Below are positions 15,884-46,581 of a stretch of DNA of 64,000 nt, piece by piece. Position numbers and translations under genes: made by a program. The notes under the pieces are model-generated. The model was not told the DNA's origin, searched no databases, and worked only from the letters and a program-made list of their open reading frames with translations. Source of the DNA: Oculina patagonica (lineage: Eukaryota). The stretch is from assembly GCF_052425735.1 (NCBI RefSeq), contig NC_135759.1, positions 45,260,001 to 45,324,000 of the forward strand, given 5' to 3'. Each line of letters starts with the position of its first letter. The first letter of the stretch is position 1.

Positions 15884-18800
15884 ATGAAGCCAGGCGAAGG
15901 TAAGCGAGTGATGGTATTCCTATTTTCAGGGCAATTGCTGACGTGTTTTTACATGAATGTTGAAGCTAGATTTGCCTCTTTTTAATGCACTTTAACGCCA
16001 AATCTTCTGTAAAAATTTATGGCATTTATAAGGTAAGCTGTATTAGTTTTACAAAGTCATTTTATATTCGAACGATTCACCAGTGGTGAGAACATTCGAC
16101 CTGAAGCTTATGTAAATTTCTTCTTAGGAAAACCCGAAGTTTATTGATGTGTTGTGTTCGCAACCAATTAAGCTTACTCCCGTCAGATTTGTGTACATAC
16201 AGCGAGCCATTAAATCACACTGCAGTTTGAGTCTAGCATGGCACTGTTAGGTTACTAGAGTAGCACTTCCCTTGAATATAAACTATGTCGTTATGCAAAT
16301 CTGCAGGTACAAGCATGTTTTCTTGCATGAAATATTCTTCATCCTGTAAAGTGTATGTTTGCTCGCTTGTGTTAAGCTTTTAACATACATAAGGCCGTTT
16401 GGGGGTTATATAATACACTTTATTTTGATTTTGGCAGCTCTAGTTTCTGGATAGAACAGTGCTCTTTATTAAGAAAAAAAATAAAGAAGCTGCAGTCATC
16501 AGTGATATAAAACTTGCATGAAGACAGACCATTAATTAGAATGTAGCTTATATATATTGTGATGTCTGGTTTGTATTATGCATACATGAGTCATACGCCT
16601 TTGAAAACAGATAACACTACATTGTAAAATGTTCTCAATTATCCATGTACATGTCAGGACATACATCCATGAAAAATCATTTATAAGAAAATAATAAAAT
16701 TACAAGATAAATTCCAGAAGATACAAATATATAAATTGATAAGGACTCTGAGGAAAAAAACATATAATCCAGGCCCGTAGGGTGGGGGGGTTCGAGGGGT
16801 TCGAACGAACCCCCTAAAATTGTTGAAGTCGGCATTTTGGGGGGGTTGAAAAGATAAAAAAAATTACACAAAACAGTCAAAAGACTGTGGCCGGTCGATA
16901 ACACGGACGACTGTACATTCCTTGCCAGGATTATCGGAGGTAGCCTCAACATTTTGACACTATAATGAGAAGTTCTAATCTTTTGGATTGGTTAATGAGG
17001 CCTTCCAAGGAGTTTTGGCAACAGGCGACATTGCTCCAAAATTGCTAAAAAGTAGTGACAATCTTGTTCAAGAGCAACGACAAGCAACAGAAACTAGCAC
17101 TAAAAGGATGTATATTTGGGACAGCGACAACGTTTCCCTCACCAAATAAGCGACTGGTGGGTTAAAAATGAGGGACATAGCAATCTCAGACAACCCCTTG
17201 GAAGGCCTCGTTAATTGATGTTCGTCTTGCTTTCCATCCTCGTCGTGGCGCCCGCGGCAATCAGAACTAGCAGTTAGTTGTCTGGATAAGCAAGCATGCG
17301 CATTTGTCAGAAACCAAATTTTCAAGATGTCTAAATGCACACACTCATTTCTTAACTTTTAAGAATATTTTTAGAATGAAAATTTCTTTCCGACGAGTAA
17401 ATATTTAAGGAAAATGCATCCCACCTCAGAATGATGTCAAAATGCAGTAAATGGCACTTGAAAGAACCTAAATTTGCAAAATTTCCTGGGGGGGGGGGGG
17501 GGGCTCGTGCCTTCGGCGCTCGTGTTAGTGCCTCCGGCGCTAAAAAATACCTCCCAAAAATAAAAGAACCCCCTTTAATAGAATCCACCCTACGGGCCTG
17601 TAATCCCAGATAAGAGAGCCTCTATGTTGGGACAAAGGTCAAAATCATTAGCATACATGTATGGTTCAATTTTCAAACAGGGACTAGACTTTTGGCCTTA
17701 TTTCCATCAATCCCTATTTCTGTCGTATTTTGCTATGCTAAGCAGATTTTGGTCTCCAACAGCGTTAGGTAAATGTCAAAATCCATTAGATTTTTTCAGG
17801 GAAATAAATAGATAGTTAAAATAAAGGCGGAAAATTATGTAAGGATCCACATGATACATCTACACAATTTGGCTGCCACTCAGTGGGATAACGTAGACAG
17901 GTTCTGACTGGTCAAGCCATGAAAATGTGTTGTGTTGTCCTTGCTTTAAAAATTAGTGGAAAAAGCAGGGCTTGAAAAAATATTCTCTGGCTATTTTTTT
18001 TTTGTTTCAATATCAGCTTAAAGCTGTTCCATCTAAATTGAAGTTGATATCTTTGCCTGTAATAAGCTCTCTTTCATTTGGTGGAATAAGCAGGGAGCTG
18101 GTTCTTGGAGGTATATACATTCCTAAGATTTCAAGGCTGTATTTTAACGATTATTTAATATTATTCAACGAAAGTAAGTTGAAGTACACATTTTGCAAAT
18201 AAGTAAAATAAAGTTCATTGTTTGCTAGTTCTAACAGGGCCAGAAAGTGAGGTTGCAGAGGAGATGGAGTGCGAGATGCAAGCCAGAGACTTCTTTGTTC
18301 ACATAGGAATGCTTATAGTGGAAGGACGGACACCCCAGCACTCCGACAAGGGAAGGGTTGAAGGGCCTCACTGTCTGTCTCTGTTTAGTGTGGCTCCTCA
18401 TGTGTGTGACCCTCAACGGGACTATAATGTAAGTGTGCTGTAACTTTAAAAAGTCTACTGACTGACTGATCAGTTGATCAAAAGAGAATTTTATTGTTAT
18501 TTAAGCAGTTGAAAATAAAGCCTGAAAAATTCAGGCTGGGTATAAAATTTATAGAACTCAGAAAAAATAAGTTAATAAAAAATAAATACAGTTTAGGTAC
18601 ATGAAACTAAATTGTAGAACTTGACTAGTCTGCTGTCTTGACGTTGACTACTTGTAGCTCCCAGTAAGTGCATAGCTCGTAGAGCATATGCCCAGGAATC
18701 GCAAACATTTGTGACATTTGTTATGGGTTAAAAATCTGTTGTACAGACTAAGCTTTGTTCAAATTTTTATCTTCAAGTTGATTCATGTACCTTGAACTAC

Positions 18801-36231: not shown

Positions 36232-39200
36232 CTAATCCATGATTTCTAATGCCTGTGAGCTTGGCCATGTGTGGACATCACTTGTTGGCCACACCCCTGA
36301 TGTGTTGTTACAAATGTTCCTCAATACTGCTTCAGTTGTAGCATCATCCAGTGTATTTAGATCAGATAGAGTCTCGTCATTTTCATGACTGAGATCTGCA
36401 AATGTTAAGTTGGTTTCCAGAATTGTCATTTCATGGTCCTCCCCTCCCCTGGTGGTGGTGTTTGTCCTAACGTGTGACACCCCCCAGTTTGAAGGATTCA
36501 CATTTGCATGTTCAGCATTAAGCATAGGTGTAAGATTTCTACGTGCTGAAAACGCACTCTCTGGTGTTGGCCTTGAGCCATTGTTATTGACATCGCCGTG
36601 GAGAACTCTGTTACGCAGCTCCTTTAAACCGTTCAAATGTTGATTAGATGATGTATCCATGGGTGATGGCGTGAGGTGTCGTGGGCGAGAATTGGACTGT
36701 GGTGTCAGGGGATGAAATCTTTGATCTGCCAGTGCATGCTGGGTTAAGGGGGGTACTGACTGGCTACGTTGGTATGATGGTGGAGGCATCTGGCCTGAAG
36801 AGGTTGTGACTTGGTTACATATTGACTCTAGTTCAGGTGAATAATCCATTGTCTGGACTATAGAGGCTTGTTGCATGTGCCCATTATCTGAACCATTGCT
36901 GTATCGGCAGGATTTAGGAACAATCCCTGTACCCCTGAAAAATATGCAAAGAAAACTGTTAGCATTAATAGTAACCTCTGTTTTACCGTCAGTACAGATA
37001 CATTGTATCTTTACATAGTGTTTTTGGTCTCTCCTTGCTACATGTAAAAGTTCATACATGAAATCTCGTTTGGATTAACTAGGGTCAACTACAGGGGAAA
37101 AATCAGCTGTGGGATGGCTTGACAGAAAACTTGAAATCTATCCTTGAAGTCACCAAAATACATCAGCTGCAACCCACAAAAATACATTACAAATGGCACA
37201 TCAGCTCAAGTGTCATAAAATTATTTATGATGACTGGATAGAACAAAATTTTGTATGGTACCCAATCTCCACAACATAAACAAGAAGAGATGCTATGAAG
37301 GGACATTATCACATTGTACTTAATTTAAGGGATAAAAATATTGTAGACAAGTCATATCCATAACCCTTCCTTCTGAGACATAACACTGATCAAATTGTAA
37401 TTTCTTCTCATATTATCGATGGAAAATGGGAATAAAGGTTGTAAGGATAAAGATACTGATCAGCAAGTGCAAACTGTATTGCCTTGATACAGAAAGTAAA
37501 AAGATTTTAAATAATTTGTCTAAAGAAATAAGCAACTATCAGGGGGGGTTATTATTTTTCTTGTCGCACCGTGCCTAACTTACCCTTGCTTAGAATGTTG
37601 TTGAGACATATGCACATCAGCAGAAGATGATGGTGGACTGGTCATGTTCACACCCTGTGAGAACCCTGTTTGAGCCATATTCTCAACATTGGTTATCGCT
37701 AATGGAAGCATGAATTCCTGTCCTCGCTGTGCAACATTAGGAGAGATAGGGTTCAGTTGCCGACCACACCCAGGAGAAGCCATTGTAGGGGAAGTGACAT
37801 ACTGCTGAGGTGCTATGCGTTGAGGAGTCCTTGGTGATGGCAAGGGGTATGCAAACGAGCCAGGTCTGCGGTTAGATGTTGGAGTTGACGGTGGATTCTG
37901 ATTTATCAGTCTTGGCTGTTTACTAGGTGACATTGGCACGTCATTGACTCCCATCTGAGATGCTCCTTGCTGGGACCAGTCACTGCTCATCAGCTGGCTA
38001 GGGTGAGTAGCAGTTGGTCGCAATGTGGGTGGGCTTGTTTCTCCTCTGGTCACCCTCTGTTCTTGAGAACTATTTGGTATTGGCGTGAAAAGAAACCGGG
38101 TTGGTTCCGCTGAGTTTGGCGTGTGTCGAGGGGTTGCACTTCCTGAACTCGGTGTAACTGGACGATTTTGTGGTGTTCCAGGAGTGTTGAACTTTGGCGA
38201 TGACTGGAAAGGTGATGGTGTTTGCGGCACTGCAGGTTGGATGGGTGTCGTTGGGGATATCATTGATGGAGTTATGGGTCTTATCTTGGTTGGATAGCCA
38301 CTGGGCGGGGTGGTAGGGTTGCCCGTAGGCTGCTGTTGTGAGTAAAACTGTCCCATCTGAGCAGGGGGACTCTGAAGGGCAGGCTGTATTGGTTTTGGTT
38401 GGATGTGTAATGGCTGCTTATGGACAGGCTTCTGTTGATTTGATATGCTTACCTAAAACAAAACAGAAAGCAACTTCATGTCATCTTTTTTTTTACATAA
38501 TTTCAAGGTGGTCTTAAACATTCTTTCAGCTCGATCACCATCAACATTTGAGTGATTTCTTAGTTTACTATGTGTGAGGTGTGGCAGCCTAATGGTTAGT
38601 GCGCTGGACTCAGGATTGAGCCTTGGCTGGGGTCATTGTTTTGTGTTCTTGGGCAAAACACTTTACTCTCACAGTGCCTCCACCCAGGTGTATAAATGGG
38701 TACCAGTGATTTTAATGCTGAGGGTAACCCTGCCGGCCGTGGACTAGCATCCCATCCAGGGGGGAGTAGAAATGTTCCTAGTCGCTTCATGCTACTGAAA
38801 CCAGGATAAGCATGGCCTTATGGGCCACCAAGCTGTATACAGACTTTTTTTAGTTTGCTATTCCATAAAAACTTAAGTTGGCAATTCATAAGATGACCTC
38901 AACTGATGAAATTTCAAATTCTCCCAGATAGAGATGCCAAAACTACCAGTACAGTGTATGTGGAATTAGCAGTGGAGAAAATATTGATGTTCATTTGGAG
39001 GTCAAACTGTATGCTAGGAATGCTAGGACAAGATTTACCTGTCTCATAATGTGAAAATCGCTAATTTACAAACAAGCCTTGACCTACTCCATTTTAATTT
39101 TTCTGTAGCCTTATAGTCCCAAGTTTTAAATGTTTAACTTTTTATAATATTGTTCGCCATAAAGGTATAATAAGCACATATTCAGTTATTTCTAAGAATT

Positions 39201-42200
39201 TCATGGTGCATTGAATTCAAGTTTTGGGCTTGCCAAGCAAGTCTCAAATTTTTCATTGCCTGGGCCAGCTAAGTGCTTACCTTAGTTTAATTTTTTGTTG
39301 CAAAATCCTAATTTACATGTAACTGGCAGACAGCTTGCCTGGGTCCTTACCAATTGGACAAGTTAGAATGAAAGGTTGCTTGCCTGACCGAAAAAATACC
39401 TTAGAGGTTCATGGTTCTACTCTACTCAACAATGGACTGATATTGGACTAAAGTTGATCAGTCTTACCAGTGTTTTATGATTCAACAACTGCTGTGGTGT
39501 GTTACACATGGCTTGGCCTTGCTGTAACATGGCATTACCAGGAATTTGTTGAATCTGTTTCTGCTGTTGTCGTTGTGGCATCTTCTTTGGTAACTGTTGT
39601 GACTGGCGTCGTTTCTGCGTCAGCAGCATTTGCTCCTCGACTTGTTTTAAAGGAGTAATCAATGACACTAACGAGTGGCCAATCTGAGGCGTGTTTAGAT
39701 CATTGCTGGACATTACAACAAATGCTGCCATAGACTTGCTGGAAACATAACTTCCGCCAACAAGAAATCTGGCCAGCTCAATCAATGTGCTAAAAACTCT
39801 GCCTAGAAGTTTGTTTGCCCATTCACACACAAGTAAACATGCCGCAGACAAAGTTTGGTCTTCCTCAATTTTGTCCCCTCCAGTCAAATTGTTTGCTGTA
39901 TTTGTTGAACTCTAAAAGCCAAGAGAAATTCAGGTTAAAATTTAGAGAGTTGACATGTAAAAAAGTGATTTCATGCTAATGATTTAGAAAAACTGAAGTA
40001 AAGTAAAGTAAAGTAACCCTACCTTATCTTTCTCATTTGCTGAAGGAACTTGAAGGGATGGGAGGGTGGGTGGTTTCACATTCTTTTTTCTTTGGATACC
40101 ACTGTAACAGTATTTAAGAATGGTTAAGGAGTTCATAACATACATGTAAGAACATGGGCAGAAAAGGAGTGCACAAGGTTTTATAATGGGTCGTATAATA
40201 ATTGTTTTCCAGAATTGTCTGAGCATCTCTATGGGTACCCACGGTCTTTGTTTGCAAATCTTTGTTTTTTAATCAGATCTTCATTTTATCTTCGTTTATT
40301 TTTTTCATGAAATTTAGTCAAATGCCAAAACTCAGAAATTACAGATATTTTTTGTAATGTTTACGAGTTTTGACAGTTTTATATCATAGTGTTCAATTTG
40401 ATCACGCCAATTTTGGGCAATTTCAGATCTTCGCTTTTATCTTGACATCTTCGTTTTTCAGCGGTGATCTTGGTGTCTTCGATTTCTTTGGAAATACCCA
40501 TAGAGAGGCTCACTGCAGTCAAGTCAGATTTGAGGCTAGAATATAGACTATTCTGGTGAGTCATGTCATTAAAATAGGAAAATTATCAGAAGAATAGTTT
40601 ACAAACACATAACATTCACAGAAACAGACACCAACAGTAAAGTTAAACAAGACAAGGCTACAGAAATAAAAAGAAGATGTCAGTCGTAAATTCTTTTTAA
40701 ACACAGTCTGAAAGGATATTTTGAATTTCCCCGAGTCCCAAGTCTTCTAGCTTTTACTCTTGGGAACACGCACTTGATGATTTTACCAAAGTCAGGTGCA
40801 CTCAACGTCCGTGCAGCATTCATACTCTCACAGTGAGCTCTGAAGAACAAATAATATTTTCATCATTTTAATGATTGCAATATAATCAGCTAATAACATT
40901 TGCTAAGAATGACCAACTATTAGACAAAACTCAACATTTTCCAAAATCTTCATAACTTAGATATATGAAAAATATTTTGATGACCATGGTCACTCGATGT
41001 AACAAACTCACACCAAAGATTCCAACCCCTTTTGAAGGAAAATAAGGAGTATTTTTTTAGTGCCAAAGGCGCAAGCCCCAAGGCGGTCTGTTGGCATGCT
41101 CCCCCAAGATATCATGAAAATTTAGGTTCTCTCAAGTGTGATTTCCTGCATTTTTGACATTACTTATGAGACATTACACAAGAAAAAAGTGTAATATGTA
41201 ATGTTAAACACTCAAGCCGTAAAAAATACAAAAGATGAGCAATTTTTCCTTGTCTTCAGAATTTCATTATAAATTGGGAGAATTTGATAAAAATCAGAAG
41301 AGCGGGAGACAAGACATCAAAACGGGAGACTCCCGATCAAATCAATAGGGTTGGAATGTCTGTCATACTTAAGGTTACATTCACAGTATCTTACTTGTAT
41401 TCGTCATACACCTCATGTTTAGGCAGAGTTGAGTTGTTGTCACACTCCTCCAAATGACAGCGAATCCTGAAATAAAAGTGATGCAAACTTTCAATTGTTT
41501 GAAATCATAAGGTCTCCAAACTACAGTACAATGCAATACAGTACAAACTTTATTGACATCTCCATGAAAAAGGCTTTTTTCAGTGACAAAAACAATCCAA
41601 CTGGTTGAATTGTTTTTCAATAATTGTGTGTTAACAAGACTTGTCATGGTTGATGATGATGACGACGATGACAATGAAAACAATGACAACTATGATTACT
41701 GATGAGCGTTGGGCTGTAATGACACTTTACAAACAGCTATGATCATGAGCAAATGCCTGATGTATCCACCAACTCACCAATGGAAAGCTTGTGTTTGCTC
41801 TGCTCTTGTTGTGGAAATTGGAAGAGCTTGATTGCTAAGGAGAAACAATAATTATTTTATTGCAATCTTAACATTTTAGTTTGACTGATCCTATTTTAAT
41901 ACTAAAATCTGCATTGATTCCCTTGCCTATGTGGTTCTAAGCTCTTATCTCTCATAGTAGAGGTACTGGTAGTTGTTTAAGAGGACAACGGTGCTAGCTG
42001 GAAAGGAATCAAGAGAATCTTGAATGCTGCAGTCTATACGTGCACTCGTCTAGGCAGACTGGGGTAGCATCAGGCTATTTTTCAGCAGCACCTACATAAA
42101 AGGGCATATTATCTCTTCAGGGAGTGGCAGATTACAGGGGAATGCTGATTTCTTGAACTCTTGATATCTCAAACCTCCTGATTATTTAACTTACTGTCGA

Positions 42201-45200
42201 TTGCATCCCATCCATCAATTAATTTAGTGGGTCTCTTAGGAAACGGAAGTTCACTTCAGGGAATTTAAAAGGCCACGTCTGTGAGTTGTGATCGGTAGAT
42301 TTCCATCCTTTACAATTCCGAGTAACAAAAATGGAATAGTCGGTTTTGAACATTAGAGTTCATGTGTTGTTGAAAGGAGCAGTAAAGGGAACCTTGCTGA
42401 TGATCAACAGAAAAAAAAGATATAATATACTTACTTGTCAAAGTCATCTTTAGAATCTGATGCTGTCTCTCCAGGTAGTCGAAGGTAAAGTAATAATTTC
42501 TCAGTGTCAGACAACTGTTGTACCTCTTCCTGAAAAACATACATGTTTCACATCATCTAAAGTGTCTACAGTAATTTCTTTGTAGAAGGCACGCATCTAC
42601 CTTAATAAACTTAAAACTGATAATCAACCAAATTAAACAGTGTTTAAGTATTTGCAGCTTACAGAAGAAAAGAACCCAATTATCCTCAGCACATTTCAAA
42701 ATAAATTTTAGTTCAACAAACTTTTCACGTTTTGGAAAACAACAGCAAGAGTTAGCCAGCTAACACAATGAACTGTAAATTAAACAAACTAATTAACTAC
42801 CGATAGATCTCATTATTTATTTAATACTAACATTAACTATGTAAATTATGTTACATTAGTGAAGATAAAACAGTTTAAAAAGAAAGTTACCAATATTTTT
42901 TGGATCCTTTCTTGTATTTCTTTGCTGAAAGGAAAAAAAGATTTCAAGATATATGTCAATCCCTCAGATTTCAAAGCTGCAGTTTTCTAGTCTAGTGGCT
43001 CATAAGGAGGGTCAAGTCTGAGTAGTTTATAAAACAGTAAATCCCCTACACCTCCCACACACAAAAATACAATAAATGATTTTAATTAAATTTCTTAGTA
43101 ACATCCAATAGATGAACTTTTATAAGTATAACCATAAAAGAGTTGACTAATAATTTCACAATAGAGTTTGTGTCTTATTATGTATATTAGAAAGCAAAGA
43201 CGTCTTAATTTCTATCACATTAATGTGTACTTTCTACATCTCAGAAAAGGTATAATTCTGTGTTGTCCTCAACCAAATGAGCAACAATGTACTTGAAAGA
43301 CAATTTTTTTCACTCAAAAACCTTATGGAACTTCTTTCTACAAAAACTTTAGAGTGCATTGATAGAAATCATTTGTCCTTTCATGTCAAAGTTGGTCAAA
43401 TTTGCGCAGCAAAAAAAGCTTTCACAACATTTGCCACTTAAACAACAAAAGCACATTTTCTTTAGACAGGTGAGCTATTAATATCTAATGAAGTTAGAAT
43501 ATAAAACACCTGGCTCTGTTGTTGATGGTTTTAAAGATAACACATGAATACTATTAATAGGCAATCCTTATTCTTTAGAATCCCACTTATGGACTACTTT
43601 ACACTATTTCTTTTCAAGATTAACTGATAACATTATGCTTAAAACTGCAATCATGATTTCAAGAAAAAAAAAAAAACAATTGACAGGTTTCATACACATG
43701 TGAAATGAATTGCCCTGATGAAAGGAAATTGCTAAATAAAACTTTTTTTTTAAGTAAACAGTTTCAAAGTGATTTATAGTAAGCAGAACTTGTCAAATTT
43801 AAATTACCTCCTTAAACAAAATTTTACAAAACAAAAATATAATTGAAAAAGTCTGATTTTTGATGCAAATATCCAAATTATCAAATGTTGAAACCATTAA
43901 ACTACCCTTTTAAAACTTGAAACATAAACATTTGAAATTGAAATTCGCGATTACTTATTTACTTTAAGTCAAATATTTATCACATCCCATTACTGCTTTC
44001 TAATTATGATTGATGGCGACATGTCTTATTCACCAATTATGAATTAATTATCTGATGAGTAAAGTCTTTTAAATCAAAATTTGCGAGGTTTATTAAGTGA
44101 GGTTATTTCTCACTGTCAATGTGCACAAACTATAACTAACAGTGTTGAAACGCTTGAAGTCTAAATAAACCCTGTTACAATAGATCTTCAACCAACATTT
44201 TGCAAGTGAATATTTTTTTTAACAAAACGACAGGCAGCTGGCAAATGTATTTTTATTTTCTTTTATAAGTGAAAGAGAAGTCTCCAAATGGCATATTTTG
44301 GTCAACACGTCTCGCTAGCAGACAGTAGAGCAATAACTTCTTTAAAATATTTCGTGGTGAACAATGCGTAGGCTGTTCCCACGACCCGATGGATCGTTAA
44401 ACACAAGAACACATGGCAAAACAAAGCCTGCAGACATGGCGCTATTCCACAACGCGCCTGTATATTGTCTTTATATTTGCAATAAAACCTTTCGTCGTTT
44501 TATTCCCAAACACGAAATAAACAACGTTGTCAATTTCAACACCGACATTTGAAGTCTAACATTCAAGTAAGATCATGATGTCTCAAAGGAATTCTTTGCT
44601 TTTAATCTTTATTGTAAAAAAATGATGAATTTAAAATTACCCGAGAACGATGTTGCAACTCAACACGCTTTCTAAAATGCCAAACTTTTGTTTCAAGCAA
44701 CAAAAAAATTAACACGGCGAGCTTTTTAACTTTTCCCGCGAAATATTCCCGCAAAAATTTTCTTCGCCCCTACATTTACCCTAAATTGTTATCTTTCCGT
44801 AAAAGGCCCCTCCGCAAAAACGGCGCTACAAAGAAGAGCGTTTCACCTACAGGATGACCTATATACCGTTCCGTTTTATTTTCACAGATCGTAAAAAATC
44901 CCGCCCAAGTGAAAATGCATTTCAAAGTAATTGCTCGCATGAAAAGCTATTATATCGTGATATTTGACCAAAGCACCTGACTTTTAGCCGTCCTAATCGC
45001 GATCACACAATTCTAATCTACACGTGTTTCATTGAATTCGATCGCATGTGAAATGCACCTACGATGCCGACTTTATGACAGCGTGTTTGTTTTACAAGCC
45101 TGGAGTTTATTACCTCGCCAATCACGAACATTTCACACGGCTAAAATGACAAATTACTGGGAAGGTCCTCTTTTGTGAAATATTAGCGTGGAATGGATTC

Positions 45201-46581
45201 ATGGAGTTATATCGTTTGGTACACTGAAATTATTCCTGCTATCCAATGGAATTACACTCCGTAGGGGTCACTACTCGACCCGCTGTGGACGAAGTAACGC
45301 AGTGTGAATTTACGTCATATAAACTAATATACAGAAAAGTCATTGCACCTTCAAGTATATTCCGTGCCGGCATGATCTTGATAGTTTGCGAACAAGGTCG
45401 CCGATCAAACGTTCTAGACAAATGTTACCCGCAGATAATAAATAAAAGCGTTATGTAAAAGGTTTCGCTTGACCACCAGTCATTTATCACGCTTCAATGA
45501 ACAAATCAAAAACAACTCAAATCATGCAGTCACAAAACTTAAGCCGGGAAATGATTTGCATCCCATTCATTTAAACGAAATAGCGTTTTTAGCAAAAAGA
45601 AAGTAATGAAAACTTCAAAAGACTTCAAGGCTACATGCATAACGAAATTGCCACCTCACTAAAAGGGGGTAAAGGAAACTTCATATTTTTGCCTGGTGAA
45701 ATAAACGTTTTCTGTGTTTACAAAACAGAAACTCGTGCTTATGTCAGCGATCGAGCTGTGCACTTTATACACTTCTGATAATTACAACAATCTTGTAAAC
45801 ACATATAAAGATTTCGTTCGATCTCTGCTAAGTTGGTATATCATCTCAACGATCGATGGCTAAGTATTTGCTCCGAAATTCCTAAATCGTGCGAAGTTTG
45901 CGAATGAATGAAATATTTTTCAAGGCCACGTGCAAAACGGAAAAACAGTGAAGCGACTTCCCGCATTCCTGCGTCACATCTGCCCAAAGCAGAAACCCAC
46001 ATGGCTTCAGTAAATCGACAATTCCTCGACAAAAACAAACTCAAATTAAACACTTTCATCAGCTAATCTAGTTTACACCTAACAATCATCCAAATTATGC
46101 ACAAAGTCAAAAAGTCGTAATGCGGTGATGTTAAGACCTGCCTATATCAACCACAAACCCGGAGGGCTTCAAAATGAAACACGTAATAAATTTAAAAACG
46201 CGCTTTTACTCGAGATTAAAAAAGAACAACATTCATTGGGCAGGCGTGATTACAAACCAGCTGCACGCGACACATCCCGCACCAAGCCATTTCCAGAACG
46301 TGCTTAGTTAATTGATCAATAAATCAACTTGATCAACGTACGTACCTTACGAAGGACTGCAACGCTTGCTCGAGCCCAGCGTTAGGATTGTCTGCTTCCT
46401 CTAGCTCGCAGTCCACTGGAGTTGGAGAGGAAGAGGACTTTAAAGACAACGAGATCGCAGCGGATTGAAGAAGCTCGCCATGTCCTCCCGGGGTTAAGTC
46501 AACAGAGGCTGAAGTACTCACGACAAGCTCACCGCCAACAGGCTTCGATCTGTCCATGATCACTTCACTAGAACTCTGCAT
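36232..46581 (-). CDS. RFX7: RFX winged-helix transcription factor, RFX7/RFX5 subfamily, 10 exons
   Basis: Exons 46581-46346, 42924-42891, 42529-42435, 41834-41778, 41466-41395, 40839-40720, 40113-40023, 39911-39468, 38452-37584, 36934-36232, with consistent phases. Motifs [65 protein letters not shown] and AACLLVCEWA..LIELARFL..KSMAA. Confidence 0.92.
38576..38850 (+). mobile_element. tRNA-derived SINE with CORE-like domain
   Basis: gcagcctaatggttagtgcgctggac head, then gtgttcttgggcaaaacactttactctcacagtgcctccacccaggtgtataaatgggtacc. Same family as 28925-29420. Confidence 0.8.
40114..40719 (-). other. U12-type (minor spliceosome) intron with AT-AA termini
   Basis: 5' site ATATCCTTT (40719-40711), branch site TCCTTAAC (40130-40123). 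The in-frame junction SK|YCYSG requires the intron to end ...TTCTTAA. Confidence 0.88.

Follow-up and report, generated by a model that had tools for sequence, protein, structure and literature searches.

The minus-strand intron 40114..40719 in the analysed window, i.e. the whole stretch of 64,000 nt from Oculina patagonica, is very probably a genuine U12-type intron of the rare AT-AA subtype in a stony-coral gene of the RFX5/RFX7 type. A minor-spliceosome intron with AT-AA termini inside the RFX DNA-binding domain had been proposed in the initial annotation, and that proposal is supported by transcripts, by the positions of the motifs, by the snRNA genes and by orthologs. Dependence of the splicing of this intron on the minor spliceosome is what its sequence features would predict.

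Background

U12 introns are defined by their 5' splice site and branch-point sequence, and non-canonical termini are tolerated and spliced (PMC3584512). In 2006, AT-AA introns were catalogued in human (3), mouse (4) and Arabidopsis (1) (PMC1557818, Table 2), and among the non-canonical termini of minor introns AT-AA has been reported as the most frequent in animals and plants, with Acropora corals being rich in minor introns (PMC10639083). The AT-AN or "A-type" introns form a recognised class which is spliced less efficiently (PMC8280824). As for the host gene, RFX5 and RFX7 are known to carry a minor intron, and this intron, which is retained in zebrafish deficient in u4atac and in cells of patients (bioRxiv 10.64898/2026.08.20.745718), is now linked to human and zebrafish phenotypes of minor-spliceosome disease. 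The present case is thus not new in kind, since minor introns with AT-AA termini have already been published, and so has the presence of minor introns in RFX5 and RFX7; its value is mainly for annotation and comparative work, and it brings no new mechanism.

The host gene is of the RFX5/7 type

The intron lies in a gene of ten exons, which were delimited as follows.

36235..46581, minus strand: whole RFX5/7-like gene, ten exons (RNA joints, junction contexts, translation and tblastn)
about 46581-46348, 42926-42891, 42529-42435, 41834-41778 and 41466-41395, minus strand: exons of the RFX5/7-like gene upstream of the domain exon
about 40839-40720, 40113-40023, 39911-39468, 38452-37584 and 36934-36235, minus strand: remaining exons of the same gene
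40720..40839, minus strand: exon encoding AHCESMNAARTLSAPDFGKIIKCVFPRVKARRLGTRGNSK, RFX DNA-binding domain (Pfam PF02257; RNA joints on both sides)
40023..40113, minus strand: exon encoding (K)YCYSGIQRKKNVKPPTLPSLQVPSANEKDK, end of the RFX domain (translation and RNA joints)

The ATG at 46581 and the stop at 36235 were set by RNA joints together with tblastn of the Pocillopora ortholog, and the last junction was placed by inference. All introns of the gene are GT-AG except 40114..40719. The exon 40839-40720 matches the Pfam family RFX_DNA_binding (PF02257) with E=3.6e-12 over profile positions 32-68 of 79. Over its middle 595 residues the protein shares 89% identity with that of Pocillopora damicornis, 85% with Montipora capricornis and 83% with Acropora millepora; these orthologs carry RFX5_N (PF18326) in addition to the RFX domain (PF02257), and the best hits outside cnidarians are proteins named RFX7 or RFX5. 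With PF02257, the KYCYSG wing that appears after splicing, and relatives bearing RFX5_N, the locus is a cnidarian RFX5/7-type gene, and it is the single such gene in the genome. The gene also contains a micro-exon of 36 nt (42891-42926, SKEIQERIQKIL) between exon 1, which ends at about 46348, and exon 3, and this micro-exon is backed by the loose end of a contig mapping to 46348-46375.

Transcript contigs span the junction

The features of the intron itself are given below.

40114..40719, minus strand: U12-type (minor) intron, 606 nt, AT-AA, phase 2 in a Lys codon (RNA joint)
40711..40719, minus strand: U12 5' splice site ATATCCTTT (exact match, 9/9)
40123..40130, minus strand: U12 branch-point sequence TCCTTAAC (motif match and complementarity to U12 snRNA)
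40114..40115, minus strand: non-canonical 3' terminal dinucleotide AA (sequence, unspliced contig and conservation in corals)

The intron interrupts the RFX DNA-binding domain after G-N-S-K and before Y-C-Y-S-G, and it is bridged by contigs of X1, X5 and X10, three runs of three studies under three organism labels. Their type was guessed to be RNA, and the contigs do behave as spliced transcripts: about half the words of a 4.7-kb stretch are present in them, a share equal to its exon fraction, and they carry five or six neighbouring junctions, all GT-AG (CT..AC on the plus strand). A further run, X15, behaves as DNA, with even depth across introns and without joints. In the three transcript assemblies, position 40110 is joined to 40717 (skips 606, both=5), by which KYCYSG is restored. 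The evidence for the junction thus comes from contigs rather than raw reads, and contigs drop rare isoforms.

The joint by itself does not fix the borders. Since AAATA stands on both sides of the gap, the 606 nt can be placed in six equivalent ways, from 40111-40716 to 40116-40721, and the mRNA reads TCA AAA TAC TGT in all of them. On the minus strand the corresponding termini are AA-TT, AA-TA, AT-AA, TA-AA, AT-AT and TC-TA, so that GT-AG, GC-AG and AT-AC do not occur among the six. The intron is called AT-AA by alignment of its start with the donor consensus, 40719..40114 being the only placement which puts it there. Under this placement the upstream exon ends with ...CGG GGA AAT TCA AA and is adjoined from 40719 by ATATCCTTTCAG, while the branch-point sequence is followed by the spacer CATTCTTAA and then by A TAC TGT TAC AGT GGT. 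Joining 40720 to 40113 gives the translation ...RRLGTRGNSKYCYSGIQRKK... / ...KARRLGTRGNSKYCYSGIQRKKNVKPP..., in which GNSKYCYSG is restored; the same motif is found in 8 cnidarian and about 94 vertebrate homologs.

The possibility that the spliced contigs derive from a retrocopy was also considered and rejected: a genome-wide search for the RFX domain gave only this locus for the protein type, and it found no contiguous copy coding for GNSKYCYSG.

U12 splicing signals

Compared with the consensus /RTATCCTTT, the 5' splice site matches at 9 of 9 positions, and ATATCCTTT occurs as a single copy in the 64-kb window, directly at the RNA-defined exon end. Close to the 3' end, TCCTTAAC at 40130-40123 agrees with the branch-site pattern TCCTTRAY. 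The presumed branch A is 40124, at a distance of 10 nt from the last intron base and 11 nt from the first exon base; the optimal distance from branch to 3' splice site is 11-13 nt in U12 introns (PMC3584512), and a range of about 10-15 nt around this optimum was applied in our branch-site test. There is no polypyrimidine tract, neither the spacer nor the sequence upstream of it being rich in pyrimidines. By chance alone, 0.84 copies of the donor and 2.4 of the branch site are expected in the window, and neither motif is enriched there; the motif evidence counts because both are found at the two ends of an intron defined by RNA, where the chance of coincidence (about 7e-6 per position for the donor, multiplied by about 1.5e-4 for a branch site at a permitted distance) is negligible. 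The donor and branch site of the initial annotation are exact, but its remark that no AG lies nearby is slightly inaccurate, for TACAG|T places one at 40103-40102, 12 nt downstream.

The terminal AA is not a base error

Non-canonical termini are a classic sign of base errors, which raises the question of whether the true end might be AC or AG and the AA an artefact of assembly. An unspliced contig of X1 (record 5, 40086-40510) shows five differences from the window, all of them elsewhere in the intron, and therefore confirms the terminal AA independently. The X15 contig also covers 40114 and is consistent with AA among the differences listed (all but 3 of 18). Moreover, AA is found at the same place in four other stony-coral sequences, and the mRNA sequence across the junction is compatible only with a skip of 606 nt. 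Contigs thus confirm the terminal A at 40114, and a sequence or assembly error, to which we would assign virtually no probability, is already refuted for practical purposes.

Minor-spliceosome machinery

The genome encodes all four minor snRNAs, namely U12 (3 copies, 93-97 bits), U6atac (113 bits), U11 (91 bits) and U4atac (61 bits). Its U12 contains GAGTAAGGAAAA, within which GTAAGGA is complementary to TCCTTAAC with one A bulged, the pairing being taken from the established U12 model. Along the established pathway of minor splicing, U11 and then U6atac would pair with the donor ATATCCTTT, and U12 would pair with the branch-point sequence, leaving A40124 bulged out. The 3' splice site would then be set mainly by the short distance from the branch (10-11 nt) and not by an AG, so that a terminal A could be tolerated where other lineages have C. 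Finally, ..TCA AA would be joined to A TAC TGT.., restoring the conserved wing SKYCYSG of the DNA-binding domain.

Alternatively, the major (U2-type) spliceosome might remove a non-canonical intron in which the U12-like motifs are relics. U2-dependent AT-AC introns do exist (PMC1557818), and at the same site Hydractinia and three paralogs of this genome have a U2-type intron. Against this stand a donor that is perfect with respect to the U12 consensus and lacks GT, a perfect branch site at the U12 distance, a junction with neither polypyrimidine tract nor AG, and the presence of the minor snRNA genes; what is more, conservation of the motifs across corals contrasts with an intron interior that varies and a length that ranges from 219 to 606 nt. 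We consider removal by the major spliceosome extremely improbable.

The same site in other species

A comparison of intron position and termini with other cnidarian and vertebrate RFX5/RFX7 genes had been suggested, and an intron of the U12 type is found at this site in bird RFX5, in an octocoral and in stony corals, as listed below.

Pocillopora verrucosa (L023): tcc AA|ATATCCTTT...CACCTTAACCTTCCTTAA|G TAC TGT, AT-AA, 219 nt
Coral contig from a metagenome (L026): ATATCCTTT, CCTT[AG]AC, AA end, 357 nt
Coral contig from a metagenome (L027/L028): ATATCCTTT, CCTT[AG]AC, AA end, 343 nt
Coral contig from a metagenome (L029): ATATCCTTT, CCTT[AG]AC, AA end, 504 nt
Octocoral Dendronephthya (L022): GTATCCTTT...TCTTAAC...AG, U12 GT-AG, 110 nt
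Bird RFX5 (L020): tcg AA|ATATCCTTT...CCTTAAC N10 AC|G TAC TGC, U12 AT-AC, 150 nt
Hydractinia (L025): GTATGT...T-rich...AG, U2-type, 625 nt
Nematostella vectensis (L018): intron absent at the site

The donor 9-mer is identical in the four other stony corals and bird RFX5, and the distance from the branch A to the last intron base is 10 nt in each of the four coral sequences (L023, L026, L027/L028 and L029), as it is in the window. Scanning metagenomes with the exact exon-end pattern of Acropora found nothing, whereas a degenerate pattern of exon end plus donor found four coral contigs; this pattern presupposes a U12 donor and is therefore blind to corals in which the intron has been lost or converted. 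In all stony corals sampled, here the window, P. verrucosa and the coral contigs from metagenomes, the intron has a fixed AA at its 3' end, which is neither an error nor a recent variant; Acropora millepora and A. cervicornis were seen as transcript contigs. The Pocillopora protein is also encoded exactly by eleven intron-free contigs of 2-5 kb. Outside stony corals, three fates of the intron are seen within Cnidaria: loss in Nematostella, the U2 type in Hydractinia and U12 GT-AG in Dendronephthya.

Regarding vertebrates, the coral gene shares with RFX5/RFX7 the gene family, with RFX5_N and the RFX DNA-binding domain. In comparison with bird RFX5, the codon and phase (AA | N TAC TGY) and the donor are alike; the branch site of the bird intron is CCTTAAC, with 11 nt from branch to end against 10 nt in the coral, and the bird intron ends with the canonical AC of AT-AC where the coral one has AA. 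With the same position and phase, and U12 signals in both, sequence comparison identifies the coral intron as an ortholog of the known vertebrate RFX5 minor intron. We infer that the orthology extends to RFX7, where the position was deduced from mis-modelled proteins reading SKYPF. The position is old, its U12 form is common to cnidarians and vertebrates, and the RFX5/7 minor intron predates the cnidarian-bilaterian split.

The AT-AA introns of human and mouse RASGRP4, FLJ21106 and MSH3 (PMC1557818) resemble the coral intron in the AT start and AA end, in a U12 donor and a branch site that fit the consensus, and in the short distance from branch to 3' splice site, while the coral case differs in host gene and lineage. 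What sets it apart from known AT-AA introns is that AA is fixed in at least five stony-coral sequences, with other lineages having AT-AC, GT-AG (U12) or U2-type introns or none. Subtype switching, conversion from U12 to U2 and loss are the fates described by Burge et al. 1998 (reviewed in PMC3584512), and the same fates are met here at one site; nothing differs in kind from that repertoire, to which AT-AA adds a further stable state. In terms of evolution, this one orthologous position offers a compact example, being AT-AA, AT-AC, U12 GT-AG, U2-type or lost.

Among paralogs in the same genome, L008 (C8), L009 and L010 (C4) carry a U2-type intron in the same codon phase (..TCN AA|GTAAG..), and the SK|Y position is therefore older than the RFX5/7 branch. 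In the RFX1-3-like paralog L001 (C14), the split lies three codons further upstream (ACA AG|GTTAGG). At G000:C10:5720687-5720920 (L007) there is an RFX-like domain of divergent sequence (profile positions 8-77), uninterrupted in an open frame of 359 aa, which may be an intronless or retroposed member of the family.

Alternative 3' sites

The initial annotation went on to suggest that the choice between AA and a nearby AC could act as a switch between productive and NMD-targeted transcripts, and this part finds no support: the AA junction is the only one among the joints listed, and the AC is not conserved. A regulated switch of this kind would tune RFX5/7 output by pairing the productive AA site with the AC 4 nt downstream (40111-40110). 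Lying 14 nt from the branch A, the AC is within the usable range of U12 3' sites, and joining to 40109 gives the frameshifted product GNSNVTVVSKEKRM*, with a stop about 40 nt further on and upstream of at least two exon junctions. Moreover, the choice of 3' splice site in U12 introns is error-prone (PMC3584512), and low-level use of the AC is possible for this reason. Yet the skip of 610 nt which it would leave is absent among the joints listed for the three transcript assemblies, all but 26 of the total, contigs being insensitive to rare forms, and the skip of 618 nt is likewise absent there; the latter would correspond to the in-frame AG at 40103-40102, whose product GNSNGIQRKK is four residues short and which is unused among the joints listed. 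Furthermore, the AC simply forms the second and third positions of a conserved Tyr codon, TAC. This codon is TAT, and the AC is hence missing, in the coral contigs L027/L028 and the Acropora transcripts L021/L024, which makes a conserved switch between AA and AC unlikely; the AT-AC intron of the bird RFX5 has the same downstream TAC without needing a switch. With one junction seen in RNA and an alternative site that varies among corals, we regard regulated switching as very unlikely.

Another reading gives a functional role to the efficiency of splicing: as an intrinsically weak A-type intron, the coral AT-AA intron would set the dose of RFX5/7 through retention or through slippage to the AC at +4 or the AG at +12, where slippage to +4 applies only to species whose Tyr codon is TAC. 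This has a slim chance of being correct; if true, it would amount to lineage-specific control, at the level of splicing, of a transcription factor of the ciliogenesis/immune type.

Gene models at the junction

It had also been expected that gene predictors would mis-model this gene, and this proved right in part: this junction is wrong in about 7 of the 113 homolog models of one list, but the NCBI models of Pocillopora, Acropora and Montipora read GNSKYCYSG. For annotation, the wing SKYCYSG comes out correctly only where AT-AA is allowed, and about 6% of the inspected homolog models are wrong there. Three of the mis-models, ..GKSKYPFGLRKK.., ..GQSKYPFASL.. and ..GKSKYPFLGLRKK.., read through into ATATCCTT, and the wrong readings include ..SKYPF.. 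and ..SKYPS..; GNSNGLRKK makes use of the downstream AG, and GKSKYHCYSG.. is likewise wrong at the junction. Public models of RFX5/7 homologs with errors at this point are P0159, P0034 (RFX7-like), P0036, P0079, P0133, P0145, P0206, P0218, P0230, P0251 and P0255, the kinds of error being read-through into ATATCCTT (SKYPF/SKYPS), use of the downstream AG, and errors of one residue.

Repeats in the gene

One repeat lies inside the U12 intron.

40220..40512, strand not assigned: MITE-like repeat, about 293 bp (inverted repeat I1; genome copies)

It is bounded by terminal inverted repeats of 18 nt (TGAGCATCTCTATGGGTA / TACCCATAGAGAGGCTCA), makes up about half of the 606-nt intron, and has at least 40 copies in the genome with 80-87% identity, spread over chromosomes. 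The insertion thus accounts for the intron being longer (606 nt) than in other corals (219-504 nt). An Rfam scan of 38400-40800 matched no family. Within the GT-AG intron 39467-38453, the segment 38591-38787 is a very high-copy repeat, whose summed contig depth reaches 233,620 in X15 and 4,000-17,000 in the transcript-like runs, and it shows many irregular joints and loose ends.
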